IMG/VR virus record: IMGVR_UViG_3300046517_002304
Location: 124,001 to 188,000 of that record
Reading direction: 5' to 3' (one strand)
Length of the DNA stretch: 64,000 nucleotides
Shown here: positions 2,236 through 63,857 of the stretch, one piece after another
Position numbering within the stretch: position 1 is the first letter of the stretch
Layout: the number at the start of each line of letters is the position of its first letter
Position numbers and translations under genes: made by a program
Notes under the pieces: model-generated
What the model saw: only the letters and a program-made list of their open reading frames with translations
Told to the model about the DNA's origin: nothing
Database searches by the model: none

Positions 2236-3072
2236 TTAGTTCATGAAATTTTCTCCATGAATAGACCAGAACTTTTGGCCCGGATTTATTATCTTTTCTT
2301 TTTCCATGCTTTGCTGTAAAGGATGTTTTGTAGAGATGTTTCTGCTCAAAACCTTGTCAATGAACCATTTATATTTTGCTGAATCAGGCATAGATTTTAA
2401 CTTAAGTGCCATATTTTCTATTTCGCGAATTCTTGGACTTCCATGCGGCAGGAAGTGTAGTTCGCCAGCCATTCTGTTTAATTCATTAGTATTAATGTCA
2501 TTTTCGCCTTGTTTTCCGCTTATCTGGAACGGCGACAAAACTCCCATAGAAACAACGTAGTAATTTTTATTAATAGGTAGCATAATAGGCGAAAATCCTT
2601 TATATGTCCCTTTTGTTGCATTTAAAAGTTTTTTTACTGTTTTGTGTATTAATTCTGGCGTGTTGACCAGATTACTCCAATGATCCCACATGGCAACTAT
2701 ACCTATATCGGGGTATTCATCTCGTATGTTTGATAATATTTCATTATCATTGTTGTACCTATGTTTATCTAAATACCCTATTCTGCCGAATGTTGCTCTA
2801 GTTTCATCTGGACTATTTTGCGCTAACTCTGTTTTATTATAAGTTATGGGCCTTAACACTTCCCCCCATGTCATATAACCTAATTGTTCTCGTAGCATGT
2901 CTGCATGCGTTTCTTTCCCGATACCACAAAATAGCTTATCGCCATTTTCTAGGTATATGAAAGATGTGGTGTGTGGGTCTTGATAGAAGTCCTCCGCATT
3001 AACCTTACTTAACATTTTAAGTAAACTATTTTCACTTTCCACAAACATTTTAAAGCTATTGGTTTGCCACAT
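2236..3072 (-). CDS. hypothetical protein with capsid-targeting-like N-terminus
   Basis: 278 aa; SFKMFVESE near start; TAAATA 9 nt upstream of ATG. Confidence 0.6.
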   Translation of the reverse strand: MWQTNSFKMFVESENSLLKMLSKVNAEDFYQDPHTTSFIYLENGDKLFCGIGKETHADMLREQLGYMTWGEVLRPITYNKTELAQNSPDETRATFGRIGYLDKHRYNNDNEILSNIRDEYPDIGIVAMWDHWSNLVNTPELIHKTVKKLLNATKGTYKGFSPIMLPINKNYYVVSMGVLSPFQISGKQGENDINTNELNRMAGELHFLPHGSPRIREIENMALKLKSMPDSAKYKWFIDKVLSRNISTKHPLQQSMEKEKIINPGQKFWSIHGENFMN

Positions 3073-3084
3073 AATCTACTATAT

Positions 3085-6000
3085 TTACTGCGGTCTTTCA
3101 TTTCTCTCTACAACAATTTTTTCCCCACCTAATGGCGCAGGTACAAATATCTGATCATCTAAGAACTCAGGAATATTTAGTCCGTTTTGGTAAGCGCCCC
3201 AACTCTCTGATCTTTGAACATTCCATGGTCTTCCGTATTCTGGACTATTTGGATTTAATCTGTTTTCTTCCGAGATACTATCTGGCATAAACCCTATGGG
3301 GATATTTGGCGTAGGCGCTTTAAAGAAAGATGCATTTCCTATAATATGGGCCGCACATATTGCTTTCCATGACGCCTTTATATCATTTTTTGGAATAGCA
3401 GTTATATTAGATATTGAATTAAGATTTGTGTGAATTCCTCTAATTACCGTTTCGCTAAGCACGATTGATGAGTCGCATTTAATATGGTTATTGCTTAGGC
3501 GATCTATATTGGCCATTCTAGAAGTAGCGGCTATTATAGAATTAGCCATATGGTCAGCCTTAGCTATCGCCAACTCCGACATATCTGTCCGTAAGCTAGT
3601 ATTGCTGATATGGACAACCTTCCCGTTTGATGAGACGGACGAGTTAGGTTTTAAGGAGCATGCTGAGCGATGGCTTGATTTTCCTACCACAGACAATGTA
3701 GATTGACCATTTAACGAATCGCTGGCGCGATGATCGGTTTTGGCATGTAGCGGCACGTTGACTAGACAGATTAAATTACTGTTTGTTCTATGAGAAACAC
3801 TCCCGCTTGATATAGCCGTGCTTATTATCTTTGCCGATGTTGAATTAAGGTGTAATGCTTTAGCAGATAATGCTAAATTACAGTTATTAATAGTTCTTAT
3901 AGAAGATACGTGGGCGACCTTAGTTTGAGACACAGATACGTTGATGTTATTAGAAATGCTTGATGCTGCCTTAGCAGACGCTTTGCCGTTAGCAGACATA
4001 TTTGATGATGATGATAATCGGCAGGTAGACACATGCGCTACTCTAGCATTTGCGTTAACCGATGATGCATTTTTGACTGAGCATACGGCCTTATCTGTGT
4101 TACTAACAGAAGCAGTCAAATTAGATGAATTAAGGAGACTGCTTATTGCTTTGCTTATTATGCGAGGTAGTAATCGTATCGCACTTACAACAGACATAAG
4201 GCTTGTGGAAAGGTGCAATATTTTTGCAGTTGAATTAAAATTAGTAGAACCTATGTTTAGAGCATTAGATAAGTGAGTTGTTTTAGCATTAGCGCTTACA
4301 AATGCTTGGCATGTAGCTGCATATGTTGAGCGCTCGGCATTTCTCGCATTAATTAATATAATAGAATTACTTGATGCTTGATAGCTAGAGTTATTTAATA
4401 CTCTGGATGCAGCAACAATGTTACTAATTGATAATTCTTGAACAGATGATTTGTGTAAAACTTGAGCGCCTGCGCTGATGTGTGCTACTGTGTTAAAAGA
4501 AGAGGTATTAGTCGCAAGAACCTTACTGATCGCTGATAAGTTTGAAGCAGCGCTATTTGTGGATGTTGTTAAATGACTAGCTGTTGCCGCTGCCGAGCAT
4601 GAAGATATGCCAGTAATATGAATTGTATTTTCAACATGGGCAACCTTTGATGAAGGCAACATTGCAGCAAAAGGAAGCGCGATAGCTTCAGCGATATGAG
4701 CGACCTTTGATACCGATGCGATATTTGCTACAGCCGCTAATGGCCAGTTACTTTGTTGGATAATTGTATCAAAACTAAGTGTCTTATAGTCTCTAGCTAG
4801 AAGTGTATTGTATCCATTAATACTGTCTTGATAAAGAAGCGATGTTTCTTCTGCGCCCAGCGCTCGTCCATACACTTTTACGTCGTTGAGGTATCCGCTA
4901 AAGAACGTTCCTGATTGATTATTAAAACTACCTAAAATTAACGGTTGCCCGTCGTCTGATTTATGTGATCCTGATCCAGATGCCGTGGCCGAATAAACTT
5001 GCTCAACTCCGTTATAGTAAATTTTAATACTTGTTCCAGAACTGCTTCCGCCCCATGAACATGCTACGTGTGTCCAATATCCAATTTTTGGAGATGCGCA
5101 AGTTCTAGTACAGTCTGTAGTACTATGAACAACTAAGAAGGACAAATTGCTGCCGCCAAGCTGGCAATACCATCCGGCCGTAGTGTCTTGATCTGTTTTA
5201 TAAACTATTGTTCCTGTTGATGTCGGATTAATCCAAAAACTGACAGTAAAAGGATTGATGCCTGTTAAATTACTAATTTTTCCATTGACACTAGAACTTT
5301 TGGCAGCAGTAAAATGCATGCTACCAAGTCCACCCTTATGGCTTGAGAAGCTCCATCCATCAGACCCGGACGACATGTTGGTCAGAGAACCATGATTATT
5401 TCGTCCGGTTAAATCATACCATTTTAATCCACGACTAGTCTGGGGTAATGCTAATAGCCATAGATTTAAAGATTTGGATAAACAACTTTTCCTATTGACC
5501 GCATAATTAAATCTAATATTATTAGAAGTTATCGGGAAAGCGCGATTAATATATCCGGCGTTTTGGAGGATTATGCTGCCTACTTCCAGATGTTGGATTT
5601 TAGCTACAGATGCCAGACCGACAGACGAAGCTATATGTGCAGTTGATGTTGTGACAGATGTAGATGTAGCTCTTACCAACGATGCATCTAACACTAGTGA
5701 AGTTGACTTAGTGCTATTTTTAGAACTGGCCATTAGGCTAGACGAACAAATTATAGATGATGTAATATGAGCGGATATTCGTGAATTAGCGTTTACCACA
5801 CATATAGGCGATACGTTAGATGTGGCTTTGTGAGAGACTTTGGAGATTAATGATAATAAAGAAGATGCATTTAATACGGAACTTGTGGAAGCAGTGTTTT
5901 TGTCGCTGTTGGCTCCGAAAGCCGAATTACATTTTATGCCAATGTTTGCCTTAGTATTTAAATTAGCTCTTGCCACGATACTAGAAGATAGCGATATAGA

Positions 6001-9000
6001 TTCTGTGGCGATATGACCAACGCCTGCTGAAGCATTTTGCGATGCTGTGCATGTAAAGTGAGTAATTGATCCGGTCACAGATCTCATGAAGGTACTGCAT
6101 GCTACCGCACAAGAGGCAGTATGAGATACTTTAGAATTAGATGCAAGATTTACTGATGCTACAACTATTGCTTGTTCAGAATGGGAAATTTTGCTTGAAG
6201 CACTAATCAGTGAATTACAAAGTATGTTGATGCTATCTTTGTTTAAATTTCTACCCAAACCAGCTATGCTTGAATTACAAGATAGATGATTTATAGATTC
6301 AACGTGCGCCACTTTAGCGCTAGGGTTAATATTAGAGGTACATGATGTTAAACAAGTCGCTACATGAGCCACTTTAGATGAAGAGTTAAATAATGTTTGG
6401 CATATTACGCCACATATATCTTTGTGCACGATGCCAGAATTACTGCCGATACTTGAAGTACAATTTAGATTATTCGTAGATTCAACATGAGTGGTTTTAG
6501 CGCTAGCTATAATACTTGAGTTACATGACGTTAGGCAAGTGCCTACGTGTGCTACTCTGGCGTTAGCTATAATACTTGAGTTACATAATGCCAAGCAAGT
6601 ACCTGCGTGCACTACTTTAGTGCTAGCTATAATACTTGAGCTACATAATGCTAAGCAAGTACCTACGTGCACTACTTTAGCATTGGCGGTAATATTAGAC
6701 GCACAAGTTAAGTTATTCGTAGACTCAACATGGACGACCTTGGCACTAGGATTAATATTAGAAGTGCATGATGCTAAGTAAGTGCCTACATGCGCTACTT
6801 TTGTATTGCTAACTGTTGAACTACTAGTATTTGCGATTAGTGTTGTGGCAACGTGGGCGACTTGAATATTGGTAACAATTAATATGCCGCTATTTGCCGA
6901 TATGAATATGGATTTATGAGCCACTCGGCAATTAGCGGAAACTGAAGACGAGCATATAATGTCACTATTGCCTGTAGTGGTTCCATGTACTGATGCGTTA
7001 ATATTAGAAGTACAAGTTAAGTGATTCACAGACTCAACATGCGCCACTTTGGCGCTAGCTATGATACTTGAATTACACGATATTAAGCAAGTACCTACAT
7101 GAGCAACTTTAGTACTGGCTATAATATTAGAGTTACATGATGCTAGGCAGGTACCTACATGCGCGACTCTAGAACTAGCTGTAATATTAGAACCGCATAA
7201 TACACCGACCACGCCTACATGTGCTACTCTGGCACTAGCTATAATGCTTGATGCACAAGCTAAGATACTAGTAATCTCAATATGCGTCACATTAGCATTG
7301 CCGCCAATACTTGAGCTACAAGTTATATGATTCGTAGATTCAACATGTGCAACTTTAGAATTAGCTATAATACTTGAGCTACATGACGCTAGGCAAGTGC
7401 CTACGTGTGCTATTCTGGCGTTAGCTATAATACTTGAGCTACATGATACTAAACAAGTGCCTACATGGGCAACTTTGGCGTTAGCTATAATATTAGAACC
7501 GCATAATACGCCAACTGTTCCTACATGCGCAACCCTAGAGCTAGCCACAATGCCTGAACTACAATTTAGGTTATTTGTAGACTCAATATGCGCTACTTTA
7601 GAATTAGGGATAATACTTGAAGAGCATGACAACAAGCAGGTGCCTACGTGTGCTACTTTAGCATTGGCTATAATATTAGAGCTACATGATACTACAGAAG
7701 TAGCGCCCAAAACAGCTCTTATGTTACATACACAAGATATGTTAGTAGTCGCAATATGAGCAACCTTAGCACTACCGCTGATACTTGAAGTACAATTTAG
7801 GCTATTCGTAGATTCAACGTGTGCTACTTTAGAATTAGCCGTAATGTTTGAACTACATGATATGTTGATGGCTCCTATATGAGCAGCCTTAACGCTGGCA
7901 GTAATATTAGAACTGCATGACAATAAGCAGGCGCCTACGTGTGCTACTTTGGCATTGGCTATAATATTAGAGCCGCACAATACCCCAACTGTTCCTACAT
8001 GCGCAACCTTAGCACTAGCTAGAATACTTGAAGTATTCAATATTAAACAGGTGCCTACATGTGTAACTTTGGCACTACCGCTGATACTTGAAGTACAATT
8101 TAGGCTATTCGTAGATTCAACGTGTGCTACTTTAGAATTAGCCGTAATGTTTGAGCTACATGATACTAAACAAGTGCCTACGTGTGCAACTTTAGCATTA
8201 GCTATAATATTAGAAGTACATGATATTAAGCAAGTCCCTACATGTGCAACCTTAGCACTAGCTATAATGTTAGAACTGCATGATACTAAACAAGTGCCTA
8301 CGTGTGCAACTTTAGCATTAGCTATAATATTAGAAGTACATGATATTAAGCAAGTCCCTACATGTGCAACCTTAGCACTGGCGGTAATATTAGACGCACA
8401 AGTTAAGTTATTCGTAGACTCAACATGGACGACCTTAGCGCTGGCAATAATACTTGAATTACAAACTATATGATTTACAGATTCAACATGGTCAACTCTG
8501 GCGCTGGCTATAATGTTTGAGCTACATGATATTAAGCAAGTCCCTACATGTGCAACCTTAGCATTAGCCGTAATATTAGAAGTGCAAGTTAAATGATTTG
8601 TAGATTCAACGTGCGCTACTTTAACATTAGCTATAATATTAGAAGTACAAACTATAGAGCAAACTGAATTACGGGTAATTTTCCCTGTTGCCACTATTGC
8701 GGAAGAACAAATAATTGCACATGTGTCTAAGTGAGCAACTTTTGCATTTGGACTAATATTACTAGTACACGTTATTACCCATGTACTTGGTGAGTTAACC
8801 GTGCTAAAGTTTATGTATTTGTTAGATCTGTTTAGTAATCCAGGATATGAAGTAATGCTATTTTGGTAAAGTAAACTTGCTTCGCCTCTAGACAAGGCTC
8901 GGTTATAAACTCTAATATCATCCATATAACCAGTTAAGCCTTGAACTGATTGGTTATATGATCCTATGACCAATGGCGATGTTATATCGTCAAAGTGTGT

Positions 9001-10827
9001 GCCGGTTCCATCGGATGTGTTCTGATATCCTTGTTCTGCACCATTATAATAAATGTGAATACCTGAGCCTAAACTAGAACCATTCCATGTTAATGTTATG
9101 TGCACCCAGGTGTTAACTGGAGGCACCACAGAAGACCTGGTGCAATCTGAACTGTTAAAAACGACAGATAACGATAGTCCACCAGAATTATAGCTAACAT
9201 ACCAACCACGCTGAACGTCATTATCTGTTTTATAAATAAGAGTTGTGGTCACCGATACAGAAATATACGTCCAAAAACTAACTGTGAACGCCCCAGTACT
9301 GGTAAGCGACGTAGCTGGTCCTAATATGTAAGAAGTACTAGCTCCAGTAAAATGAAAGCTACCAAAACCGCCCTTGTGGCTTGATGGCTTGAAGCCATCA
9401 ACAGCCGAACTCATGTTTGTTAAAGTACCCGAATTTCTTCTACTAGTTAAATCATATATTTTTGATGCTTTACTAGTTTGCGCTTCTGCTAGATACCATA
9501 ATACTAGTCCTTTGGATAATGGATGCTTTAAATTTATACGATTACTAAATCTTTGATTATTGGCAGACGTAGTAAAAATTTTATTTATGTTCGGAGCAAA
9601 CCCAGCAAATTGGGTGATAAAAGAAGACACTAACAAATGGGCGACTTTGGCATTGTTAACAGTAGAATTACTGCTGCATATTATGCTGGTAGTGGCTTTT
9701 GTGGCATCTCTTCCTGCCGCTACAATACTACTATTACATCTTACCCCACAAGTGGCAACATGCGTAACCCTACAATTAGGCGTCGTAATGCTAGAATTAC
9801 ACTTAACATCACAAATACCAAAAACAAAGTTCTGTAATGCAAAGTAAGGTATAAGCGAAGGCTGAGAATAAAGTTCGTCAGGATAACGCCAAAGTTCAAA
9901 AACCTGTCCTGCCGTAAAAGGTTCAGCATATAACCTAAAGTCACGTATCGGTCCTATAAAATTATGGCTTGCACTAGCTCCGCTAGTGGCAACCTGCCCG
10001 CCGATGGTAATGGCTTGATTAGCGCACGATAACACTCCGGCAGCGTTTGCGCTGGCGGAGGTACTTGTGGCAATTAACTGTCCGTTAATATAAAAGTACT
10101 GCGGCCGTGTTGCCGGAAAAGGATTAAACCGGCTTACTACGCAAGCATGAATCCATTCGCCAGGATTATCGTCAATCCTAATAACAAAGTCATTACCAGC
10201 ATAAATGTTATCGATCCAGTGTAATTCACGAGTATGAGGATCATACCAGAGGTACCATCCTTGAATGGTCGCTGGCCCACTATCATGAGGAACATGATTG
10301 CCAACAATAACATAGGTAAAACCACCGGCGACTTGGTCAGGCGGTATCATAAACCAGATAGACATTGTCCAGCCGACTGATTCTGAATTTACAATTTGCG
10401 GAATAGAGCACTGGGTAGGTACAGTAATATAATTATCGCCTGCTATCCTGTTAAACACCATGCCGAAGTAAGAGTCATATATCCACTGTCCTGTTAGATG
10501 ACCTGTTAGTGCGCCGTTAAAGTGGTTTGGTCCTACGTCCCTAACTGGATAGAAACCAGATCCTCCCGTACCATTTGAATCTCCAGAACCATCATTCAAC
10601 GGCATAGCCAACACAAGTGTTGGCGTATACTGCGAGCTACCTTCGTTAATGCCAGGACACCAGAGTCCTCCCCATTCTGTATTTGTAATACATGGACGAA
10701 CGTCAGGTACTGAGCCAGAGAATGACTGGATAGAAACTAGGCTACCGTCGATAGAATATGATAACGTTGGATCTACATCGCTGAATGTAGGTAGCTTTCT
10801 TATTGTAGCTAACGGAGTTATCACCAT
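3085..10827 (-). CDS. giant fibre/adhesin-like virion protein with three LamG/ConA-like domains and His/Cys repeats
   Basis: 2580 aa; three LamG signatures (WTMSIWF..WIHACV..YING..IRDFRLY; FTVSFW..WVHIT..YYNG..MDDIRVYNRALS; FTVSFW..WTHVA..YYNG..LNDVKVYGRAL) separated by S/T/A-rich repeats. Confidence 0.8.
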   Translation of the reverse strand: MVITPLATIRKLPTFSDVDPTLSYSIDGSLVSIQSFSGSVPDVRPCITNTEWGGLWCPGINEGSSQYTPTLVLAMPLNDGSGDSNGTGGSGFYPVRDVGPNHFNGALTGHLTGQWIYDSYFGMVFNRIAGDNYITVPTQCSIPQIVNSESVGWTMSIWFMIPPDQVAGGFTYVIVGNHVPHDSGPATIQGWYLWYDPHTRELHWIDNIYAGNDFVIRIDDNPGEWIHACVVSRFNPFPATRPQYFYINGQLIATSTSASANAAGVLSCANQAITIGGQVATSGASASHNFIGPIRDFRLYAEPFTAGQVFELWRYPDELYSQPSLIPYFALQNFVFGICDVKCNSSITTPNCRVTHVATCGVRCNSSIVAAGRDATKATTSIICSSNSTVNNAKVAHLLVSSFITQFAGFAPNINKIFTTSANNQRFSNRINLKHPLSKGLVLWYLAEAQTSKASKIYDLTSRRNSGTLTNMSSAVDGFKPSSHKGGFGSFHFTGASTSYILGPATSLTSTGAFTVSFWTYISVSVTTTLIYKTDNDVQRGWYVSYNSGGLSLSVVFNSSDCTRSSVVPPVNTWVHITLTWNGSSLGSGIHIYYNGAEQGYQNTSDGTGTHFDDITSPLVIGSYNQSVQGLTGYMDDIRVYNRALSRGEASLLYQNSITSYPGLLNRSNKYINFSTVNSPSTWVITCTSNISPNAKVAHLDTCAIICSSAIVATGKITRNSVCSIVCTSNIIANVKVAHVESTNHLTCTSNITANAKVAHVGTCLISCSSNIIASARVDHVESVNHIVCNSSIIASAKVVHVESTNNLTCASNITASAKVAHVGTCLISCTSNIIANAKVAHVGTCLVSCSSNIIASAKVAHVGTCLISCTSNIIANAKVAHVGTCLVSCSSNITANSKVAHVESTNSLNCTSSISGSAKVTHVGTCLILNTSSILASAKVAHVGTVGVLCGSNIIANAKVAHVGACLLSCSSNITASVKAAHIGAINISCSSNITANSKVAHVESTNSLNCTSSISGSAKVAHIATTNISCVCNIRAVLGATSVVSCSSNIIANAKVAHVGTCLLSCSSSIIPNSKVAHIESTNNLNCSSGIVASSRVAHVGTVGVLCGSNIIANAKVAHVGTCLVSCSSSIIANARIAHVGTCLASCSSSIIANSKVAHVESTNHITCSSSIGGNANVTHIEITSILACASSIIASARVAHVGVVGVLCGSNITASSRVAHVGTCLASCNSNIIASTKVAHVGTCLISCNSSIIASAKVAHVESVNHLTCTSNINASVHGTTTGNSDIICSSSVSANCRVAHKSIFISANSGILIVTNIQVAHVATTLIANTSSSTVSNTKVAHVGTYLASCTSNINPSAKVVHVESTNNLTCASNITANAKVVHVGTCLALCSSSIIASTKVVHAGTCLALCNSSIIANARVAHVGTCLTSCNSSIIASAKTTHVESTNNLNCTSSIGSNSGIVHKDICGVICQTLFNSSSKVAHVATCLTSCTSNINPSAKVAHVESINHLSCNSSIAGLGRNLNKDSINILCNSLISASSKISHSEQAIVVASVNLASNSKVSHTASCAVACSTFMRSVTGSITHFTCTASQNASAGVGHIATESISLSSSIVARANLNTKANIGIKCNSAFGANSDKNTASTSSVLNASSLLSLISKVSHKATSNVSPICVVNANSRISAHITSSIICSSSLMASSKNSTKSTSLVLDASLVRATSTSVTTSTAHIASSVGLASVAKIQHLEVGSIILQNAGYINRAFPITSNNIRFNYAVNRKSCLSKSLNLWLLALPQTSRGLKWYDLTGRNNHGSLTNMSSGSDGWSFSSHKGGLGSMHFTAAKSSSVNGKISNLTGINPFTVSFWINPTSTGTIVYKTDQDTTAGWYCQLGGSNLSFLVVHSTTDCTRTCASPKIGYWTHVACSWGGSSSGTSIKIYYNGVEQVYSATASGSGSHKSDDGQPLILGSFNNQSGTFFSGYLNDVKVYGRALGAEETSLLYQDSINGYNTLLARDYKTLSFDTIIQQSNWPLAAVANIASVSKVAHIAEAIALPFAAMLPSSKVAHVENTIHITGISSCSAAATASHLTTSTNSAASNLSAISKVLATNTSSFNTVAHISAGAQVLHKSSVQELSISNIVAASRVLNNSSYQASSNSIILINARNAERSTYAATCQAFVSANAKTTHLSNALNIGSTNFNSTAKILHLSTSLMSVVSAIRLLPRIISKAISSLLNSSNLTASVSNTDKAVCSVKNASSVNANARVAHVSTCRLSSSSNMSANGKASAKAASSISNNINVSVSQTKVAHVSSIRTINNCNLALSAKALHLNSTSAKIISTAISSGSVSHRTNSNLICLVNVPLHAKTDHRASDSLNGQSTLSVVGKSSHRSACSLKPNSSVSSNGKVVHISNTSLRTDMSELAIAKADHMANSIIAATSRMANIDRLSNNHIKCDSSIVLSETVIRGIHTNLNSISNITAIPKNDIKASWKAICAAHIIGNASFFKAPTPNIPIGFMPDSISEENRLNPNSPEYGRPWNVQRSESWGAYQNGLNIPEFLDDQIFVPAPLGGEKIVVERNERPQ
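5900..8760 (-). repeat. coding tandem repeat, 60/63-bp units (AKVAHVGTCLISCSSNIIAS / SKVAHVESTNNLTCASNITAS)
   Basis: 8161-8259 is identical to 8281-8379 (120-bp higher-order duplication); ~7770-7850 recurs at ~8072-8150; degenerate copies extend to ~3350; boundaries approximate. Confidence 0.9.
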
Positions 10828-10831
10828 ATAC

Positions 10832-10837
10832 TATTTA
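10832..10837 (-). promoter_or_regulatory. T4-like late promoter element TAAATA, 4 nt before ATG
   Basis: CATAAATAGTATATG, identical 15-mer to that at 29759-29773. Confidence 0.65.
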
Positions 10838-10872
10838 TGGTGAATTTAGATAATGAAGAAAATTATCAAATA

Positions 10873-11307: not shown

Positions 11308-12177
11308 ATGACTAAGATATTCGTCACCGCAGGAATCGGTGATTTTATAGCATCTGAATGCTTTTTTCCCGAAGATTTGAGGAAAAGCATTACCAAGATA
11401 TATTACGCAACTCCAGCGCAAAAAGAAATTATTCAGATCGTTTCAGCGCTACCTAATTATCCGAATCTTAAAGAACAAGTAATCATATGGAAAGAGTTTA
11501 ATAACCCAGCGCCATATTGCTTCTTTCACAAGAATCACTTTGAGGGATTTTCTAAAAATCATAATGGCGATCCACTTCCAGGTGATTGGAATGAGGTTGA
11601 AGATTGGAGTATCGCCATCAGGTTTAAGGCAGTTAATGAAACAAATGTCTTTAACTACTGGGAACTTTCAAAGACGTTAATTAAACAAGAAGATTTTACA
11701 GATTATACATATTCCAGTTTAATAAAACATAAGCTATGTGATGCGCCTAGCCCGCCGCTAAATGCAGTGGCAATCGCGCCAGTAACAAGTAGTTTTGGCA
11801 GTCCTCCAGAAAGAAATTTTAATGATGACGACTGGAGCACTATTTTATCATTACTAACTGAAAATAACCAGATAGGTGTAGTTTTAGGAACTGGTAATCT
11901 TTATGTTCCAAATCACGGCAGAATTATTAATTTGCTTAATCAAACTTCTATTTTGCAATCGATTGAAATATTAAAACAGTGCCACGGATATTATGGTATT
12001 GACTCTTTTATGTCGGTATTAGCAGCCAAGTTATTTGATAATATAAGAATTAAAAGTTTAAACTCTCACTGTTATCGCTACAAGCACATATATTATTATC
12101 CTAAAACAAATTTTGATTTTTTGTACGGAGCCAACAATCTTGTTCTTCACGCTTTTGGATTAACTGATTTAAAATGA
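11308..12177 (+). CDS. GT9/heptosyltransferase-like glycosyltransferase
   Basis: AGIGD N-terminal motif; INLLNQTSILQSIEILKQCHGYYGIDS C-terminal motif. Confidence 0.65.
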   Translation: MTKIFVTAGIGDFIASECFFPEDLRKSITKIYYATPAQKEIIQIVSALPNYPNLKEQVIIWKEFNNPAPYCFFHKNHFEGFSKNHNGDPLPGDWNEVEDWSIAIRFKAVNETNVFNYWELSKTLIKQEDFTDYTYSSLIKHKLCDAPSPPLNAVAIAPVTSSFGSPPERNFNDDDWSTILSLLTENNQIGVVLGTGNLYVPNHGRIINLLNQTSILQSIEILKQCHGYYGIDSFMSVLAAKLFDNIRIKSLNSHCYRYKHIYYYPKTNFDFLYGANNLVLHAFGLTDLK

Positions 12178-14231
12178 ACGTAATAAAAACATGTAAACAC
12201 GGCCAATTCATATACAATCCGAATGATGAATATATTGGTAGATCACTCACTAATTATGGCGAATATGAAGAAGAAGAGGTTAGGTTTTTTGAAAGCGTAA
12301 TCAAAGAAGGCGATTGGGTATTAGATATTGGGGCCAATATTGGCACGCATACCATAGCTTTTTCTAAGTTAGTTGGCAATGGTGCGGTATGGGCATTTGA
12401 ACCACAAAGACAGGTATATTATGCTCTTTGTGGCAATATAGCAATTAACAATTTGAGTAATGTGTACGCATTTCAACAAGTGGTTAGCAACAAAGATGGG
12501 CAAATGAAAATACCAGAACTTGATTTTAAAGTTCCAGGCAATTTCGGCGGCTTAGAGTTGCATAAAAAGTATGCGCCGAACAAGCCAAACACCATGGCAA
12601 GAATGACCACTATTGATTTAATGAAATTAAAGAGATGTAATTTCATTAAAATAGATGTAGAGGGAATGGAAATGAACGTGTTGGCTGGGGCCAGAAACAC
12701 TATCATTAAATTTCAGCCAATCCTATTCGTTGAAAACGATAGGTTGGACATGGCCAAAGATCTAACTGAATACATAATCAAATTAGGATATAAAACATAT
12801 ATTTATAAGTCATTGTTGTTTAACAAAAACAACTTTCATAAAAATCAGAATAACGTTTTTGGCTTTGTGGGATGTTTAAATTTGATTTGTATACCAAATC
12901 ACATGGCGGACCAATTTGAAGCGGCGTCAGATTTTAAGCCATTTGACGGAGTATTTGACGATAATGACAAGTCTAGTTCAGCAAATGCTATGAGTATTAT
13001 TCGTTGCGATTCTATAAATTATCTTCTTGAATCTGCTCAAAAATGTTCAAATATTCATGAATATGAAAAAGCAGAAGAGTACCTGAATATTGCTTTAAAA
13101 ATTAAAGATGATGAACATGCTGTTTATACTGGACTAGCGGCTTTGATGTATAAGAAAACGGACTTCTCCAGAGCTTTGACATACCTTGATAAATCATTGT
13201 CGCTAGAGCATTCTTTGGCTAATTTAAACTCCAAAGGACTGACGCTAGGGTTTTTAAATCGCCCGAAAGAAGCCATAGAGTGTTTCCGAGAATATTTAAT
13301 GCATAAAGAAAATGATGCACAGGTTCATTTTAATATGTCTTTGGATATGATAAAATCTGGAGATTTTAAAGAAGGCTTCCGAGAGTATGAGTGGAGGCTT
13401 CTATTGCCTAAATCGTCTGCTTATATGGAAAGGTTTGGTTCAAAGCCTATATGGGAAGGTTCGCCAAATAAAAAAGTTCTTTTGTTTATTGAGCAGGGTG
13501 TTGGTGATTTTATACAATTCGTTAGATACGCCAAGCTTCTAAAAGAAAGAGGCTGCTATGTTATTAGCGAAATGTGGGATGATGTAAAAGATTTATTTAA
13601 AGATTACCCTTATATTGATGAATTTGTAGCAATACGCAAATATGGCGAGGATGATTGTAAATTACCTGAATTTGACTGTATTGCATCTTGGTGCAGTTTG
13701 CCATACATTTTCAAAACAACTACAGAAACAATTCCTAGTGACGTACCTTATATTACTGTTAAAGATGGGTTTGATGATATTAATGGCGGAATAGGCATAG
13801 TTTGGGCAGGAAGCACCGTACACGACCATGATCATATAAGAAGCTGCTATTTGAGAGATTTAAAGCCATTAGATGGTCTTAAGTTATACTCCTTACAAAA
13901 AGGCAGTATGCAGAGAGTATGGAACAATACTGGTCCAGTTGATTTAATGGATGGATCTGATGTTAAGTATACAGATCTAGCGCCAAGAATTAATGATTTC
14001 AATGATACTGCTAAAATAATATCTAAATTAGATGCTGTGGCTACTGTTGATACGTCGGTGGCTCATTTAGCGGCGGCTATGGGTAAGCCAGTTTACTTGG
14101 CTCTTGGAAAATCTAATGACTTTCGTTGGTTTGATAAGGGATCTAGCTCACCTTGGTATCCGACTGTTCAGATTTTTCGGCAGGAATCGTCTTGGCTTCA
14201 GGTTTGGGAGCAAGTTCGGCAGAAACTATAA
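12174..14231 (+). CDS. FkbM-family methyltransferase + TPR + GT9-like fusion
   Basis: VLDIGANIG, AFEP, IKIDVEGME; TPR helices; EQGVGDFIQFVRY, GIVWAG, TVDTSVAHLAAAMGKP, SPWYP. Confidence 0.85.
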   Translation: MNVIKTCKHGQFIYNPNDEYIGRSLTNYGEYEEEEVRFFESVIKEGDWVLDIGANIGTHTIAFSKLVGNGAVWAFEPQRQVYYALCGNIAINNLSNVYAFQQVVSNKDGQMKIPELDFKVPGNFGGLELHKKYAPNKPNTMARMTTIDLMKLKRCNFIKIDVEGMEMNVLAGARNTIIKFQPILFVENDRLDMAKDLTEYIIKLGYKTYIYKSLLFNKNNFHKNQNNVFGFVGCLNLICIPNHMADQFEAASDFKPFDGVFDDNDKSSSANAMSIIRCDSINYLLESAQKCSNIHEYEKAEEYLNIALKIKDDEHAVYTGLAALMYKKTDFSRALTYLDKSLSLEHSLANLNSKGLTLGFLNRPKEAIECFREYLMHKENDAQVHFNMSLDMIKSGDFKEGFREYEWRLLLPKSSAYMERFGSKPIWEGSPNKKVLLFIEQGVGDFIQFVRYAKLLKERGCYVISEMWDDVKDLFKDYPYIDEFVAIRKYGEDDCKLPEFDCIASWCSLPYIFKTTTETIPSDVPYITVKDGFDDINGGIGIVWAGSTVHDHDHIRSCYLRDLKPLDGLKLYSLQKGSMQRVWNNTGPVDLMDGSDVKYTDLAPRINDFNDTAKIISKLDAVATVDTSVAHLAAAMGKPVYLALGKSNDFRWFDKGSSSPWYPTVQIFRQESSWLQVWEQVRQKL

Positions 14232-40814: not shown

Positions 40815-40842
40815 ATTTATGGTTTAATATTGTAAATATATC

Positions 40843-46297: not shown

Positions 46298-46299
46298 TA

Positions 46300-48934: not shown

Positions 48935-51430
48935 ATGGCAGATTGGCTACAACCATTTAAAGCATTCAGCGGTTCTTTTACAGAACCACCTGTTGCGCAG
49001 ATCACAAGTTTAGACAGAATACAACCCGCTGGTATTACTCAGCCCGATGCATTGTCTTTAAAAGATAATTCTGCCCTACAGGGCAATCGCTTTATTGCCC
49101 TTAGAGACACAACCGACCTAGTGGATCTATCTGTAAGTAATCAGGCACGCAACGGCAGGTATATGGAACTTGAGCGTCTTAGAAATATGGTAGAAATTGA
49201 AACTGCCTTAGCCATATATGCTGATGAATGTTGTGTATCTGGGGACACAAAGGTTTATACTCCATTTGGAAAGATTAAAATTAAACAACTGGCACAGGAA
49301 AAACAGCCAGATGAACTGTTCCTTGTATATTGCTATGATTTTAAGAAGAAGGATTATACTCTTGGATGGGCATTTCATCCAAGACTTGTTAAGAGAGCCG
49401 AAACAGTCCAAGTAATTTTTAGTAATGGCAGAAAAGTCGTTCTAACACCAGATCATCGTATATTAAAAACAGATGGAACGTGGTGCATGGCAGGAGATTT
49501 GCAGTTCGGCGATGAGACGATGCAATTCAACAGAGTCCAACCATTTGTTAGTATGAAGAAGTTGACTCAAAATAGATTTCCAAGAATTAAGAGCGCTAGA
49601 TTTGGATGGCAGACAGAAAAATTACTAGTGGCAGAGTGGGAAGCAGGAGGTGTGCCTCAGGAATTTATCAGAGAGCATCAGATTACGCAAGGGCTTACTA
49701 AAGGAATGTCGTTGCAGGAAGTTGCAGATTCTATAGGAATTCATGTAAGAGGACTTAGAGAACAAGTTCGCAATAAGAATATTTCGCTACAAGAAATTCG
49801 TAGACTTAACGATACTTATCCAGACAAACTAAGGGTAGCTAAAGTTATACCACATGATGTGATGGATGTATATGATCTATCTGTGCAAGAGCATGAAAAT
49901 TTTTGCACCAATGGTGGTATTATGCATAACTGTCAGTTAGGCGAGAACGGTCGCTGCTTAGAAATACACACGGCGAATAAGGATGTTAAAAGACTTTGCG
50001 AAAGATTATGTCATGAAGATTTAGAAATGGACGATGCTTTGTGGGGATCGCATCGCAATCTATGCTTATATGGCGATGAATTCTGGGAACTAGTTATTGA
50101 CCCAACATCACCAAAAGACGGTATTCTCAAAGTACAGTCCTTACCAGCAGCAACAATGTATAGAATTGAAACCATTAGAGGAAAGCTTCTAGAGTTTCAG
50201 CAGAGTGGAACTGGCGCAGATATTCAGGCATTAGCCAATCCAGACTTGGCACAAAGCACAAGCGGAGCGATTAGATTCACTCCGCAACAGATTGTACATT
50301 TTCGTTTAGGCGGCGATAGAAGAATGTTTTATCCATATGGAGAATCTATTCTAGAATCAGCTAAATCAGCAGCGCACCAACTGCGATTAATGGAAGATGC
50401 AATGACCGTTTATAGGCTTACCCGCAGCCCATCCAGACGTATTTTCTATATTGATGTTGGTCAAATGCCACCGGCAAAACAAGAATCTGCCATTGAAAGA
50501 GTCATGGCGCAATTTCGTAAAAAGAAAGTATTTAATAATAGAACAGCATCTGGTCTTAATTCATCTGGCGTAGAAGAACGCTGGAATCCGGTTTCATTTG
50601 ATGAAGATTTTTGGATTCCACTAAAGACCGGAGACAATACCAGAATTGATACATTAAACGAAGGCGTTTCCTGGAATCAGATTGATGATATTCTATATTT
50701 TAGAAATAAACTTTTGATTGCGCTAGGATTGCCCAAGAGTTATTTGGCACAAGAAGATCCTGCGTTAACACGATTAAATTTATCATCACAGGACATTAGA
50801 TTTGCTAAGCGAATTGAGCGACATCAAATGGTCGTCGCGCAGGGTATCCGACAGTTATGCAAGAGACACTTGGAGTTACTAGGTTTTCCTGCTCATGAAT
50901 TTTCTGACTTAAGAATTAAGATTACCCCATCTTCTGACTGGCGCGAAATTAGCAGAAATGAAGTTACTGAAGCAAGATTCAATAGAGCGTCTGCCATAAA
51001 AGGCGCAGGATTAATGAGCGACTACGATATTTTGGTTGAAGTTCTAAAAATAGAACCAGAAAAATCAAAAGAACTAGTGTCCAGACTCAAGATGCAAAAA
51101 CTGGATGAAATGAAGCTTGCTGCAATGGCTGCTAATCCTAGATTTTTGGGACTTGCGGAAGAATCTCCGACTAATGAAATCGGCACAGAAGCAGGAGGTC
51201 CGATGACAGACTTATCTCCAGAGAGCGGTGCCGAAGCACAGGGACAGGGGCAAGAAATGGGACAAGAATCCCAAGGCGAACAAAATCCACAACAAGGCCA
51301 AATGTCACTATTGCCCGAGCCTTCAGATGACGATATAGTTAAGTATAACATGCATATATCGAATTATGCTCGTGAAATGGACTCTGAGGATATTGACGCC
51401 GGGGAATTAAATGAAGATAATCAATCTTGA
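48935..51430 (+). CDS. gp20: portal protein, T4 gp20 family, intein-containing
   Basis: ALAIYADE, YGD.F, PYGESILE.A....QLRLMEDAM..YR..R.P.RRIFYIDVG, EDFWIP, D.RF...IER.Q. Confidence 0.93.
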   Translation: MADWLQPFKAFSGSFTEPPVAQITSLDRIQPAGITQPDALSLKDNSALQGNRFIALRDTTDLVDLSVSNQARNGRYMELERLRNMVEIETALAIYADECCVSGDTKVYTPFGKIKIKQLAQEKQPDELFLVYCYDFKKKDYTLGWAFHPRLVKRAETVQVIFSNGRKVVLTPDHRILKTDGTWCMAGDLQFGDETMQFNRVQPFVSMKKLTQNRFPRIKSARFGWQTEKLLVAEWEAGGVPQEFIREHQITQGLTKGMSLQEVADSIGIHVRGLREQVRNKNISLQEIRRLNDTYPDKLRVAKVIPHDVMDVYDLSVQEHENFCTNGGIMHNCQLGENGRCLEIHTANKDVKRLCERLCHEDLEMDDALWGSHRNLCLYGDEFWELVIDPTSPKDGILKVQSLPAATMYRIETIRGKLLEFQQSGTGADIQALANPDLAQSTSGAIRFTPQQIVHFRLGGDRRMFYPYGESILESAKSAAHQLRLMEDAMTVYRLTRSPSRRIFYIDVGQMPPAKQESAIERVMAQFRKKKVFNNRTASGLNSSGVEERWNPVSFDEDFWIPLKTGDNTRIDTLNEGVSWNQIDDILYFRNKLLIALGLPKSYLAQEDPALTRLNLSSQDIRFAKRIERHQMVVAQGIRQLCKRHLELLGFPAHEFSDLRIKITPSSDWREISRNEVTEARFNRASAIKGAGLMSDYDILVEVLKIEPEKSKELVSRLKMQKLDEMKLAAMAANPRFLGLAEESPTNEIGTEAGGPMTDLSPESGAEAQGQGQEMGQESQGEQNPQQGQMSLLPEPSDDDIVKYNMHISNYAREMDSEDIDAGELNEDNQS
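49232..49930 (+). mobile_element. intein (233 aa) in portal
   Basis: CVSGDT block A, LTPDHRI block B, VYDLSVQEHENF...MHN followed by Cys +1. Confidence 0.92.
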
Positions 51431-51810: not shown

Positions 51811-52251
51811 ATGAATCAATCTCAAATGATAAATTTACTAATCGGTGATTTAAAAAACGAATACCATCACATGAATTTTTACTTGTGGGCGTCGGTCGCG
51901 GTTTCTGGACTACATAGGGAAGAATTTTCTGAATTTTTCTCCGAAGCGGCTAAAAGCGAAATGAGTCATGTTAGGGAATTTTATAATGCATTGCTTACAT
52001 TAGGGTATATGGCCGTTCCGCCAGATCAACAGGCGGCAGATTATATAGAAGCCACTACATTAACTGATGTTACGTCATTATTAAAATATGCCATAGGCAT
52101 GGAAGAACAGGTTGTGGCAAATTATACCCAGAGAATAAAGGATGCCGAACAACTAGGCGGATCGGACGGGAAATATCTGGAAATATTCTTAGAGAATCAA
52201 CTTTTAGATTCTAAGAATGATTCTACTCATATGCAGCAGATGATGAAGTAA
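51811..52251 (+). CDS. ferritin-like (bacterioferritin-type) protein
   Basis: E..H..Y, E...EMSH, MEEQVVANY four-helix pattern. Confidence 0.75.
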   Translation: MNQSQMINLLIGDLKNEYHHMNFYLWASVAVSGLHREEFSEFFSEAAKSEMSHVREFYNALLTLGYMAVPPDQQAADYIEATTLTDVTSLLKYAIGMEEQVVANYTQRIKDAEQLGGSDGKYLEIFLENQLLDSKNDSTHMQQMMK

Positions 52252-60570: not shown

Positions 60571-60960
60571 ATGAAGAAACTCATCTTATTATTCTTAATG
60601 TGCCTTTCGGGCTGCGCCATCAGTCCTTTTTTAGGCCCAGCAGGGGATGCTATTGTTGCTTGGAAAGATGGGGAAGCGGACAGATACTATAATGCTAGTT
60701 CCGAAGCAATCTACAAAGCTACTAAGAGTAGTCTCATAAAATTAGGTATACCCATACTGAAAGATGAAGCCGTACGACCTGGAACTTATAATTTAGTTGC
60801 GGGCCATGGCGATAAGTTTAAGATTAATATAACAAATAAAAATATTCACATAACTTGCGTTAAGATAAGAGTTAATTTTATGGGCGATCATGATTACGCT
60901 GAGTTAATTTTTGGCACTATATCTAAAGAAATATATGTGATTAATTTTCCGAAAACCTAG
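60571..60960 (+). CDS. lipoprotein (DUF3568-like)
   Basis: Lipobox LSGC; T.VKIRV.F.GD. Confidence 0.65.
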   Translation: MKKLILLFLMCLSGCAISPFLGPAGDAIVAWKDGEADRYYNASSEAIYKATKSSLIKLGIPILKDEAVRPGTYNLVAGHGDKFKINITNKNIHITCVKIRVNFMGDHDYAELIFGTISKEIYVINFPKT

Positions 60961-61315
60961 GTCGCCATATCATAGTTGGCCCAAACATACTTGATAATCT
61001 ATAGTCCTTATTTCTGCCCTTATTGTGCACAAACCCTAATTTAGTATAAAATCTAAGTAGTGCCGCTTTTTTACCTGGTCCTGGTTCAGGACTCAAAACT
61101 ATCGGCTGGTTGATTCTCTTGGCGAAGTTTTGGATTTGCTGCATTACAGCAGTGCCTATACCTTCGCCGTGACGAGGGGTCTCAATATTGGAAATATGTA
61201 TCACCCCATCTTGTGACTGGAATACCCATAGATCTAATCCAGTGTATTTAGCTATTAGCTGTTGACGCAGAGCCTCCAGCTCTGCGTTTTCTTCTAAGAA
61301 TAACTTAAAATTCAT
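60941..61315 (-). CDS. GNAT acetyltransferase with capsid-targeting-like N-terminus
   Basis: Start revised to ATG 61315, MNFKLFLEE; RHGEGIGT motif A; LRFYTKLGF motif B. Confidence 0.75.
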   Translation of the reverse strand: MNFKLFLEENAELEALRQQLIAKYTGLDLWVFQSQDGVIHISNIETPRHGEGIGTAVMQQIQNFAKRINQPIVLSPEPGPGKKAALLRFYTKLGFVHNKGRNKDYRLSSMFGPTMIWRPRFSEN

Positions 61316-62750
61316 TAAAGTATAGCCTATGAAGCTTTCCGCCAGACACGGCATGGGTTTTGGTGTGGAATTTTGAATAATCGATTGAATCAACAAATTC
61401 AACATCATTTTCAGCAACCAATTTATTGACCATAAACATAGCTGAATCCATAGCGCTGTCTTGATCTACGCTTAGCTCCTGTATCATACATCCAACTTTA
61501 TTAAATTCCATATAATGCTCGCTGGCAATTTCAATCTCAACGCCAGCCATACTAGCATTAAGAGCCACAAGACCATGCGCCTCTGGAATTTTAAAGCTAC
61601 AAACGCCCTTTTTTCTGACAATAGTTGTATCATTTAGCTGCCAAACTGTGTCCATGTCGTTAATTTCAATATCATCAATGTTTTTTTCACTTAACATTTT
61701 AATAGCAGGCTTTAGTATTTTACGACGAACGAAGGCGCTTTTAATTACAGCCTCGTATTTTGGAAAGTAGCTTCTAGCAGAAACCACCATTGCATTAGCA
61801 ATAGCTGCATAAAATCTATTGGTCAATGGAGCTAGTGTTAGGCACTTAAAATATATAGACGCCATTGCATCCCTGGCAGAAACAAGAGCATCATGAGCGG
61901 TCACGCCGTTTTTACGGTCTAGATTATACATTCCAACAAATGCTTCGTACCAGGCTCCGGTAAACACTCTGCTGAAACTATGGCATTCTCCACCGAGTTT
62001 CCCGTCGCCAGATGTATTATATGGTAGAGATTCTGGTATTGTATACATAAAATCATTGACTGCATTTCTAAGCGCGTCAGATAACCCTGCTCTCCCATCG
62101 GTCATACGATTAATCGCTACGCCCATTTGTTCCGCAAGACGAGAAATAAGATTACTTTTACTTAAGTCATCTCCAGTTTCAACCAAAGCATCTTTTATTA
62201 GTTCTTCGTGTTGTAGCGCGCTAAGGATTGCCATGGTATCGCCAAATGCTTCGTGAAACGCCGCAGTTTCTAAACATTGAACATTCCATAGGTCTGGACG
62301 AACTCCGTCTAATATAGCATGGCCAAGCTCGTGCGCGACAATGTCAGGTGACTCACAAGTATAGACTGTTTTGCCGTCTTTGTCTTTATCATAGAAAAAC
62401 TTTAAAGCTTGACGATCATAATAAGCATTAAATTGAACGCCTGCGCGAGGGAATACACTCAAGTTATTTATAGACGACCAACGATGCAGAGCGTGCATTA
62501 AATTAGGTTGAACAAATCCAAGAGTAAAGGCTAGAGTAGAATATACCTGCATAACTTGTGGGTCATTTTTATCACCGACGAGCGTAAAGACTGGGCACGG
62601 ATTAGGAAGGTTAGGAATATTAATCTTAACTTTTTCTGGAACCGATGGATCATCTAGAATATAATCAAAGTCCGAACCAATTGTTGGATTCATTGATTTT
62701 ACATTTGATTGTCGGTTAAAAAAATTGCCTAAGAATTTAAAGAATTGCAT
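61305..62750 (-). CDS. zinc metalloprotease (M4/M36-like)
   Basis: NAYY, DIVAHELGHAILD, AFHEAFGD, ECHSFSRV. Confidence 0.85.
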   Translation of the reverse strand: MQFFKFLGNFFNRQSNVKSMNPTIGSDFDYILDDPSVPEKVKINIPNLPNPCPVFTLVGDKNDPQVMQVYSTLAFTLGFVQPNLMHALHRWSSINNLSVFPRAGVQFNAYYDRQALKFFYDKDKDGKTVYTCESPDIVAHELGHAILDGVRPDLWNVQCLETAAFHEAFGDTMAILSALQHEELIKDALVETGDDLSKSNLISRLAEQMGVAINRMTDGRAGLSDALRNAVNDFMYTIPESLPYNTSGDGKLGGECHSFSRVFTGAWYEAFVGMYNLDRKNGVTAHDALVSARDAMASIYFKCLTLAPLTNRFYAAIANAMVVSARSYFPKYEAVIKSAFVRRKILKPAIKMLSEKNIDDIEINDMDTVWQLNDTTIVRKKGVCSFKIPEAHGLVALNASMAGVEIEIASEHYMEFNKVGCMIQELSVDQDSAMDSAMFMVNKLVAENDVEFVDSIDYSKFHTKTHAVSGGKLHRLYFNEF

Positions 62751-62801
62751 ATTATTTTTTCCATAAGTGTATTATAGAATATTTATTCAATCAAGTCTTA
62801 A

Positions 62802-63857
62802 TTAACTTGTAGCAGCAGTAAATTCCGCAATTTGGGCGGGCTTTTTAAACTGAGATGCTACTGCTCTAAGAACCGTCATCCATTCAGGGCTTCCTTTAGG
62901 CAGCGCTCTCCAGTCATCAATCGTCATCATAGTCCCACGGGGGGCCTTTGGATCAATGTATCTTTTTGCTATATGAACAATGTACTTATTAATTATTGCT
63001 TCTTTTGGCGTCATTGTGCCTGGCGCTGGGGGCGGAGCCGGGCCTGTTGGAGTTGCCCCTTTTGCTATTTCATCGTCTATTCTTTGAGCTTCTTGTTCTA
63101 CTATTGCATTATTACCTATATCATAATGATGCGTAAGATGCTGAACAAAGTCTAGGGCGCTTTCTGGTCTGCCTCCCATTGCTCCCATTTCCGCTCTATA
63201 GGTTGCATATAATTTTTTAAGCATGCTTTGCCAAGGAGCGGATTTACGCAAATATAGAGAGATGATAAATATTGACAGCAAATCTCTAATTGCCTTGTCT
63301 TTTGGCTTCCATCTAGCCCTTTTTTCAAATCCATCAATTATGAACTGATGCTCCGCTTTATCCTTGCTTGATGCATGCGGAGTATGGGTCTTAGGCGGTG
63401 TTGGAACTTGACGATGCTGTTCCCAGTTATCATCTAAAGTATTGTTAATAACCTGCGGATCATGAACTCCGGGAGGGAATCGGTATATCTTTGGATTTAA
63501 ATCATGTGCTTGTACATACAATCCAATTAATTCTCTTGGATTAAATTGATGCTGATTTACTTTATTGATACTATTTGTTAAGTCAATTAGGGTTTTATCT
63601 GGAATAATTTGATTTAAAGCCAAGGACTTTACGACATTAGTAAGATTTTTCTTAGCAAATAGGTCGGCTTTGTTCCACTTAACATTATGCTCACTTTGCA
63701 AAAACTTTATAAACTCATCCGCCGCTTTATTAAAATCTGCATCTGTAGGCTTGCCTTGTGTAATTCCCTGCATCATTCCTTGTGCGAATTGATTCACACC
63801 AGATAAGAATCCAGCTTCATCGTACTGATTGCTCCACTCTTTAAACCTTAATGCCAT
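62802..63857 (-). CDS. putative internal head protein
   Basis: MALRFKEW...YDEAG; TAAATA 5 nt before ATG 63857. Confidence 0.55.
   Translation of the reverse strand: MALRFKEWSNQYDEAGFLSGVNQFAQGMMQGITQGKPTDADFNKAADEFIKFLQSEHNVKWNKADLFAKKNLTNVVKSLALNQIIPDKTLIDLTNSINKVNQHQFNPRELIGLYVQAHDLNPKIYRFPPGVHDPQVINNTLDDNWEQHRQVPTPPKTHTPHASSKDKAEHQFIIDGFEKRARWKPKDKAIRDLLSIFIISLYLRKSAPWQSMLKKLYATYRAEMGAMGGRPESALDFVQHLTHHYDIGNNAIVEQEAQRIDDEIAKGATPTGPAPPPAPGTMTPKEAIINKYIVHIAKRYIDPKAPRGTMMTIDDWRALPKGSPEWMTVLRAVASQFKKPAQIAEFTAATS

Follow-up and report, generated by a model that had tools for sequence, protein, structure and literature searches.

Bacteriophage T4 addresses its internal proteins (IPs) to the head with a short N-terminal capsid-targeting sequence (CTS), with the first 10 residues of IPIII sufficient for encapsidation, residues 4 and 7 of the CTS chiefly directing targeting, residues 8 and 10 directing processing, and the protease gp21 cleaving after Glu in the sequence L/I-X-E (PMC9026906). 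The T4 IPs are first-response anti-defence factors, with IPI* blocking GmrSD and IPIII needed on strain ECOR17 (PMC3012670, PMC9391042). Both the tag system (from the CTS, IPs, and Alt of T4) and large, processed ejection proteomes (from phiKZ-like phages) are already known. Here we describe a comparable N-terminal sequence, hereafter the tag, in an uncultivated, T4-like, 511-kb phage, where an earlier note had drawn attention to nine genes in a window of 64,000 nucleotides (nt), bases 124,001-188,000 of the 511,233-bp contig IMGVR_UViG_3300046517_002304; positions below are those of the window unless given as genome positions. The tag is enriched at gene starts, is found on unrelated proteins, occurs together with a T4-type head and protease, and is kept in a relative. 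It is likely to be a T4-type capsid-targeting propeptide, which would dock its carriers in the assembling head, be cleaved after Glu, and release mature proteins that are retained in the head and in part ejected.

Enrichment of the tag at gene starts

Greedy longest-ORF calling gave 871 open reading frames (ORFs) across the whole genome, with 22 of the 871 N-termini matching the strict pattern M-x(1,2)-[FWY]-x-x-[FWY]-[LIVCM]-x?-E compared with ~0.8 expected from the rate of the pattern's core inside proteins. A six-frame control within the same genome found the pattern at 21 of 682 ATG gene starts and at 12 of 19,924 other ATGs (odds ratio 53, p = 1.5e-23), with 4 of these 12 probably true starts overlooked by the longest-ORF rule. 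The pattern is therefore far above chance, and the earlier note's count of about nine tagged genes was too low: a leave-one-out position matrix retrieves 28-32 N-termini, compared with 1-2 expected from internal Met positions, and the profile together with looser variants gives ~30-39 carriers (~35-40 genome-wide), or ~4% of genes. The carrier list used below includes the looser variants and holds 39 proteins, with 8,044 residues in total. A paralogue family of proteins of 92-100 amino acids (aa) with the N-terminus MEDD(I/V)xYLxE(x)GF (genome positions 347097-347375, 363914-364216, 399786-400079, and 495256-495540) also reaches a moderate matrix score, and is distinct from the tag.

A compositional artefact of an A/T-rich genome, or wrong start-codon calls, could be suspected with a motif this short and degenerate and with gene calls this simple, however that explanation is refuted by the same-genome control, by the lack of enrichment in a 484-kb phage of equal GC, and by the recurrence of the motif in homologues from independent metagenomes, and it retains next to no probability.

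The tag consensus is M-[KRNS]-(x)-F/W-x-x-[FWY]-[LIV]-(x)-E, a sequence of 8-12 residues predicted to be helical, with hydrophobic residues at i, i+3, and i+4. All strict carriers have an aromatic at residue 3 or 4 and another three residues on, with Phe as the first aromatic in 20 of 22. Glu is present in 36 of the 39 listed carriers, ~20 of which have [LIVM]-x-E. All-against-all BLASTP of the 39 found two paralogue pairs only (29771/31201 and 33167/33396), in addition to two marginal hits, and the tag appears to be modular, common to proteins with unrelated mature parts.

An N-terminal module of this kind might have another role, such as an amphipathic helix for a chaperone, a hub protein, or the membrane, or a part in near-leaderless translation, with its likeness to the T4 CTS coincidental. 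In many carriers no more than 4-6 nt separate the upstream signal from the ATG, which could place a special constraint on the first codons, and the codons for K, N, F, I, L, Y, and E are all A/T-rich. The synonymous codons at the conserved positions vary freely, however, with Phe encoded by TTT or TTC, Leu by five codons, and Glu by GAA or GAG, and with F, W, or Y at the second aromatic, where W (TGG) is common. Furthermore, 24 other genes that begin four nucleotides behind the hexamer TAAATA (TAAATA-N4-ATG) have N-termini unrelated to the tag. Because codons vary and the other TAAATA-N4 genes lack the motif, it can be attributed neither to an RNA element nor to near-leaderless starts, and selection acts on the peptide, not on the nucleotides.

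The nine N-termini first noticed

Each of the nine N-termini quoted in the earlier note is present in the sequence where the note had placed it. The corresponding genes are as follows, with the arrow standing after the tag Glu:

33167-33394, + strand: 75-aa tagged protein, MKTWTQYCE↓N; mature isoelectric point (pI) ~10; TAAATA 6 nt upstream; paralogue of 33396
33396-33614, + strand: 72-aa tagged protein, MKTWTQYLE↓A; mature pI 10.7; tandem paralogue of 33167
29771-31204, + strand: 477-aa tagged protein, MRFRAYLE↓SFGSFNY...; TAAATA-N4-ATG; all-alpha
31201-32607, + strand: 468-aa tagged paralogue of 29771 (47% identity), MRFSQFIE↓SFGSFNY...; start overlaps the stop of 29771
18989-20539, + strand: 516-aa tagged ORFan, MNFTDFIQE↓T; TAAATT upstream
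41093-41389, + strand: 98-aa tagged protein, MNNFYHYLE↓S; comes second in a unit of two genes that diverges from the gene for the prohead protease
60941-61315, - strand: 124-aa tagged mini-GNAT-like protein, MNFKLFLEE↓N; start at the ATG at 61315
2236-3072, - strand: 278-aa protein, MWQTNSFKMFVE (MWQTN-SFKMFVE↓S); motif offset by 5 residues; TAAATA 9 nt upstream
62802-63863 (starts 63863/63857), - strand: 353-aa protein, M(FM)ALRFKEWSNQYDE↓A; weak resemblance, excluded from the members

Membership is robust for the first seven. The 278-aa protein is a plausible carrier, with its offset motif having p ~0.001 per protein and ~0.9 such cases expected among 871 proteins, and the motif of the 353-aa protein is not significant (p ~0.007 per protein, ~6 expected by chance genome-wide). 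The description of several of these genes as lying directly behind TAAATA holds for 29771 (TAAATA-N4-ATG), 33167 (N6), and 3072 (N9), but not for 18989, which has TAAATT, or for 63863, which has only TAAAT.

The tandem pair 33167/33396, with mature pI values of 10-10.7, provides the closest analogues of the T4 IPs. The 516-aa ORFan has no match to families, PDB, or the ESM Atlas. The upstream partner of 41093-41389, a gene at 40843-41100, has TAAATA-N4-ATG. For the mini-GNAT-like protein, the ATG at 61315 is taken as the likely true start, because the TTG-extended ORF would otherwise overlap the upstream gene. That upstream neighbour, a 481-aa ORF (61305-62750, - strand), may encode a zinc metalloprotease, given its HELGH sequence at residue 140 and a weak match to thermolysin (Peptidase_M4); its N-terminus, MQFFKFLGNFF, bears no more than a vague likeness to the tag and was left out of the carrier count.

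Conservation of the Glu junction in the 477-aa family

The 477-aa protein has 39 relatives in a large protein collection. In ~30 metagenomic homologues the leader Glu stands directly before the conserved sequence [IM]FGSFNY..VP.DKE.QLYDFYM, with the leaders mostly of the same type and of varying length (MRFKLFME, MSFTRYLE, MGFKEWLNLLE, MINFKQYFTLNE, and MNFKDYIQLFE). Glu8 is >=90% conserved in the family alignment, the junction of the longer leaders obeys L-x-E, and one homologue starts straight at MFGSFRY.

In the AF2 model of the 477-aa protein (pLDDT 82.5), residues 1-10 have a mean pLDDT of 51 and the next 20 residues values of 88-98, a low-confidence leader on a confident body being what a removable propeptide would be expected to look like. 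Both this protein and its 468-aa paralogue are all-alpha, and searches with the model using Foldseek against PDB and BFVD and using VIA-align wide did not identify a convincing fold (best Z 4.7). For 29771-31204, the public gene call starts at Met30, giving 448 aa instead of 477 and dropping the tag, and automatic annotation can therefore miss such leaders.

Comparison with the T4 capsid-targeting sequence and with other huge phages

The four positions conserved in the tag are those of Tyr4, Phe7, Ile8, and Glu10 in the T4 sequence MKTYQEFIAE. As a positive control, the same regular expression was run on T4 bases 1-125,000, returning ipII, ipIII, gene 61.1 (MKTFKEFIKE), and one 21-codon ORF, with matches at 3 of 144 ATG gene starts compared with 1 of 4,948 other ATGs (p = 9e-5). 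The T4 gene ipI starts MKTFKEF, and the maturation site of T4 gp23, FGSFLTE↓A, also fits the core of the tag. Gene 61.1 (L013:18966-19130), which encodes a 54-aa hypothetical protein in the early region, begins with a near-perfect CTS; either T4 has a head peptide that has been overlooked, or the gene cautions against reading the motif by itself as proof.

The nearest record to the source phage in the phage collection is LR756511.1 (595 kb, an unannotated ‘uncultured phage’), with a major capsid protein 61% identical; megablast of 12 kb against the collection found no DNA similarity. The tag is enriched in LR756511.1 as well, occurring at 13 of 764 ATG gene starts compared with 13 of 21,207 other ATGs (p = 7e-13), with ~20-31 carriers under looser rules. 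The 484-kb LR756508.1 (GC 39.6%) has a capsid protein ~30% identical and a gp21-like protease, with the pattern at 1 of 499 ATG gene starts and 10 of 13,333 other ATGs (p = 0.33, not significant). Large size or A/T-richness of a phage genome therefore does not account for the tag, as this composition-matched genome shows no enrichment. The gp21-like protease of LR756508.1 was matched in two pieces ~1.1 kb apart (~156,570-158,070), and an intein or intron may interrupt it.

Both LR756508.1, a huge phage with gp21 and without the motif, and T4 61.1, which has the motif without known packaging, would fit an N-terminal module with some role other than targeting, whereas the one-for-one match of the conserved positions to the four functional positions of the T4 CTS, and the position of the Glu just where the conserved body begins in ~30 homologues whose leaders differ in length, are poorly explained by coincidence. 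Together with the free variation of codons described above, this makes a different role for the motif improbable, more so than any other alternative considered here apart from chance.

The T4-type head module

The contig ends of the source phage overlap by 127 bp, and its IMG/VR record lists direct terminal repeats and a rating of 100% complete; the GC content is 39%. In huge uncultivated phages generally, ~90% of genes are ORFans. Pfam and PHROGs scans place a T4-type head module, with gp23, gp21, gp20, and gp17 types, within the window:

37684-39135, - strand: gp23-type major capsid protein (PF07068, 291 bits), with L-x-E sites in the N-terminal propeptide (ILME45, NLNE55)
40128-40814, - strand: gp21-type prohead protease (Peptidase_S77; PF03420, 88 bits; phrog_207)
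39224-40135, - strand: acidic helical protein of 303 aa, flanked by the protease and capsid genes and containing 14 [LIV]-x-E sites
48935-51430, + strand: gp20-type portal protein, carrying an intein (Intein_splicing domain, residues 130-332) that precedes the portal domain
46261-48027: gp17-type terminase

Aligned with T4 gp21, the S77 protease keeps the His/Ser/Asp residues via ...DHP..., ...GVSTRG..., and ...FDIV.... It is the sole S77 copy in the genome, and is presumed to be the enzyme that cuts the tag after Glu. The acidic protein at 39224-40135 occupies the position of the T4 gp22 scaffold and is 40% identical to the gene in the same place of LR756511.1, with no family match in Pfam or PHROGs and no tblastn similarity to T4 gp22; we presume it to be a gp22-like scaffold core, and the likely docking partner of the tag. 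The analogy with T4 on which the earlier note was built is upheld by the head module in the window, the catalytic residues of the protease, the CTS positions, the recovery of ipII and ipIII, and the unrelated nature of the carriers.

Several homing-endonuclease-like genes (HNH, GIY-YIG) lie around the head module, at 35769-37616 (+), 42725-44044 (+), 27314-27937 (-), and 15003-16460 (-), with that at 27314-27937 carrying TAAATA-N4-ATG. Auxiliary genes typical of huge phages are located at 20996-22057, 23759-24739, 28730-29467, 32604-33137, 51811-52251, and 12174-14231, with products that include an IMPDH/GMP reductase, a PRPP synthetase, a short class-I Trp/Tyr tRNA-synthetase-like protein, an MT-A70 methyltransferase, a ferritin-like protein, and an FkbM methyltransferase-TPR-glycosyltransferase fusion.

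Putative timing signals and gene location

TAAATA lies <=12 nt before the ATG in 8 of 22 strict carriers, compared with 48 of 849 other genes. The spacing to the ATG is sharply fixed at 4 nt, an arrangement found in 30 genes genome-wide, most of them without a Shine-Dalgarno sequence, and suggestive of late promoters giving leaderless or nearly leaderless mRNAs. The non-carrier genes with TAAATA-N4 include those for the tail tube, a sheath stabiliser, two virion structural proteins, and a 2,580-aa ORF. TAAATA behaves like the core of the T4 late promoter, a reading taken from gene content only, because the T4 late sigma factor gp55 was not detected by phmmer. Examples of TAAATA-N4 in the window are at 10828-10843, before the 2,580-aa ORF, at 29755-29770, and at 40827-40842.

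The 2,580-aa ORF (3085-10827, - strand) has no PHROG family match. Its N-terminus, MVITPLATIRKLPTFS, resembles the MALVRTLPTFS of a 1,645-aa ORF at genome positions 459148-464085, which is also behind TAAATA-N4, and both are probably giant virion or fibre proteins.

A third signal, in addition to TAAATA and a TATATA-type sequence found before some carriers, is TAGTTATCC(G/A)T (TAGTTATCCRT), which ends ~11 nt upstream of ~56 small, mostly minus-strand genes. These are packed in one block at genome positions ~260,000-400,000, outside the window, where TAAATA and tagged genes are almost absent, and TAGTTATCCRT probably represents a separate promoter class, perhaps an early one. The 255-410 kb block holds 1 of the 39 carriers compared with 394 of 871 genes (45%; p = 1.4e-9), and this sole carrier has TAAATA. 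The carriers thus avoid the putative early region.

Content of the putative cargo

Pfam and PHROGs scans of the carriers are almost all blank, with most carriers being ORFans and the largest reaching 704 aa, and PDB sequence searches for four carriers returned nothing useful. Two carriers pass the Pfam cut-off, a NUDIX protein (genome positions 235397-235840) and a RelA_SpoT protein (genome positions 490246-490788). The homologue of the NUDIX carrier in LR756511.1 starts without the tag; similarly, the four homologues of the mini-GNAT have other N-termini or none, with no tag leader.

The mini-GNAT (60941-61315) conserves the acetyl-CoA loop (GEGIGTA; Q/R-x-x-G-x-G/A), and its homologues carry PF13508, with its own Pfam score below the cut-off (21.2 vs 27). 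Its model (pLDDT 77.8) matches GNAT folds at probability 1.00, with the anti-CRISPR mini-GNAT acetyltransferase AcrVA5 (6iuf) at rank 2 in PDB (TM 0.64 by target, root mean square deviation 3.7 Å over 92 columns, 20% identity). This likeness is at the level of the fold only, with the other top hits being ordinary GNATs, and the description of the 124-aa protein as a minimal GNAT resembling AcrVA5 would serve as a lead rather than an assignment. AcrVA5 is not known to be packaged. A search for related loci of the GNAT and RelA/SpoT-like proteins returned self-like matches only, and IMG metagenome 3300047312 contains near-identical contigs.

Five small carriers (56-77 aa) consist of a Gly/Ala-rich middle and a polylysine C-terminus behind the tag. 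The genome encodes 9 proteins with polybasic C-terminal tails, 4 of which are carriers, and the same class is present in LR756511.1; the small basic polylysine-tailed peptides are probably DNA counter-ions. The median pI of the mature parts of the carriers is 9.0, compared with 7.8 for the genome. Hypervariability of the carriers relative to LR756511.1 was considered and set aside, with 13% having a homologue there compared with 19% of all genes (p = 0.41, not distinguishable).

The tag could target the prohead with most carriers nonetheless being components of the assembly core, cut up and expelled before DNA entry, rather than injected effectors. T4 gp67, gp68, and most of gp22 are core proteins of this kind, gp21 substrates that mostly leave the head (PMC9026906), and many carriers are ORFans without sign of enzymatic function; moreover, additional core proteins that determine size may be required to build a very large capsid. 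The carriers are, however, diverse and mostly unrelated, with only 5 of 39 having a homologue in the nearest relative, which is unusual for assembly parts, and the mini-GNAT, NUDIX, and RelA/SpoT-like members, as well as the polylysine-tailed peptides, better fit cargo that is retained or ejected. We therefore regard a core role for most carriers as unlikely.

Discussion

Taken as a T4-type capsid-targeting propeptide, the tag would act as follows. Tagged proteins would be made together with the head proteins, and the two tag aromatics would dock the carriers onto the scaffold core of the assembling prohead, where the gp21-type protease (40128-40814) would cut after the tag Glu, freeing the mature proteins inside the shell. 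The mature proteins would then stay with the DNA, with at least some exiting via the portal and tail at infection. The portal is the exit channel for DNA and any ejected proteins. The enzyme-like part of the cargo (mini-GNAT, RelA/SpoT-like, and NUDIX proteins) could act on the host as soon as it is delivered.

A number of points weigh against a targeting propeptide. The packaging and timing of the carriers are predicted from the genome sequence of an uncultivated phage. A clear TAAATA is present in only ~1/3 of them, with five having a TATATA-type signal. Approximately 14 of 39 have aromatic-[LIV]-E, with Leu at P2, unlike the T4 rule of L/I at P3, and the specificity of the protease would therefore have to differ slightly from that of T4. 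The gp21-like protease of LR756508.1, in a genome without tag enrichment, indicates that protease and tag are not strictly coupled. We know of no report of T4 61.1 being packaged, and the motif alone therefore does not prove packaging. The assignment of 39224-40135 as a scaffold is based on position and composition only. Finally, tblastn of T4 ipI, ipII, ipIII, 22, 67, and 68 against the genome gave no match at E <= 1e-3, however missing homology to the IPs does not bear on the mechanism, because the IPs of the T4-even phages are themselves mutually unrelated.

With these points taken into account, a capsid-targeting propeptide is still the probable explanation of the tag. A broader proposal, which we put forward tentatively and with rather less confidence, is that a clade of huge T4-like phages loads an injected proteome of at least 35 proteins (~4% of genes) by means of a sequence-readable tag, and that this proteome may include ready-made enzymes for modifying the host or its defences (a NUDIX hydrolase, an AcrVA5-like mini-GNAT, and a nucleotide pyrophosphokinase of the RelA/SpoT-like kind), together with a new class of DNA-condensing peptides built of tag, linker, and polylysine. 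The counts of 3-4 in T4, ~20-30 in the 595-kb relative, and ~35-40 here suggest that cargo number grows with capsid size.

If the tag marks cargo, candidate injected effectors of huge uncultivated phages can be searched for by a rule that is both cheap and specific, and, were the proposal of an injected proteome true, simply scanning N-termini could list the first-minute arsenal of uncultivated giant phages. New effector types that can be put to the test are indicated, namely a packaged mini-GNAT, a RelA/SpoT-like enzyme, a NUDIX hydrolase, and polylysine-tailed peptides. What is new here is the scale, with ~35-40 carriers, the cargo classes, and the listing of probable head cargo from sequence in an uncultivated huge-phage clade; a full-text search of one literature library found no paper linking capsid-targeting sequences with huge phages.

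Comparison with known systems

The phiKZ-like giants (phiKZ, 201phi2-1, and SPN3US) have a large and diverse head-internal set of proteins cut after Glu by a gp21-type protease (PMC9026906). Processing in these phages involves a diverged gp21 homologue and the sequence S/A-X-E, a cleavage motif that differs from that of the tag described here, with propeptides that are long and varied. For these phages, unlike the present one, a shared N-terminal address tag recognisable from sequence has not been reported.

In contrast to the 3-4 T4 IPs, the carriers described here number ~35-40, reach 704 aa, and include enzyme-like domains. The tag itself occurs in two registers, with the first aromatic at residue 3 or 4, and often has Leu at P2 rather than P3, unlike the T4 CTS. 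The mature parts have no sequence homology to those of the T4 IPs, and their packaging is predicted from the genes.

The similarities to T4 lie in the tag and its setting. As in the T4 IPs, a tag of ~10 residues at the N-terminus has aromatics three residues apart, then L/I, and then Glu, and is carried by otherwise unrelated, often small and basic proteins, with the genes scattered and some present as tandem paralogues; as in T4, the genome encodes a head of the gp23/gp21/gp20 type. Furthermore, T4 Alt, a packaged ADP-ribosyltransferase that is co-injected with the DNA, is a head-borne, host-modifying enzyme behind a short propeptide cleaved by gp21. Whilst the enzyme families differ, enzyme cargo of the kind suggested by the tagged mini-GNAT, RelA/SpoT-like, and NUDIX proteins has its precedent in Alt.

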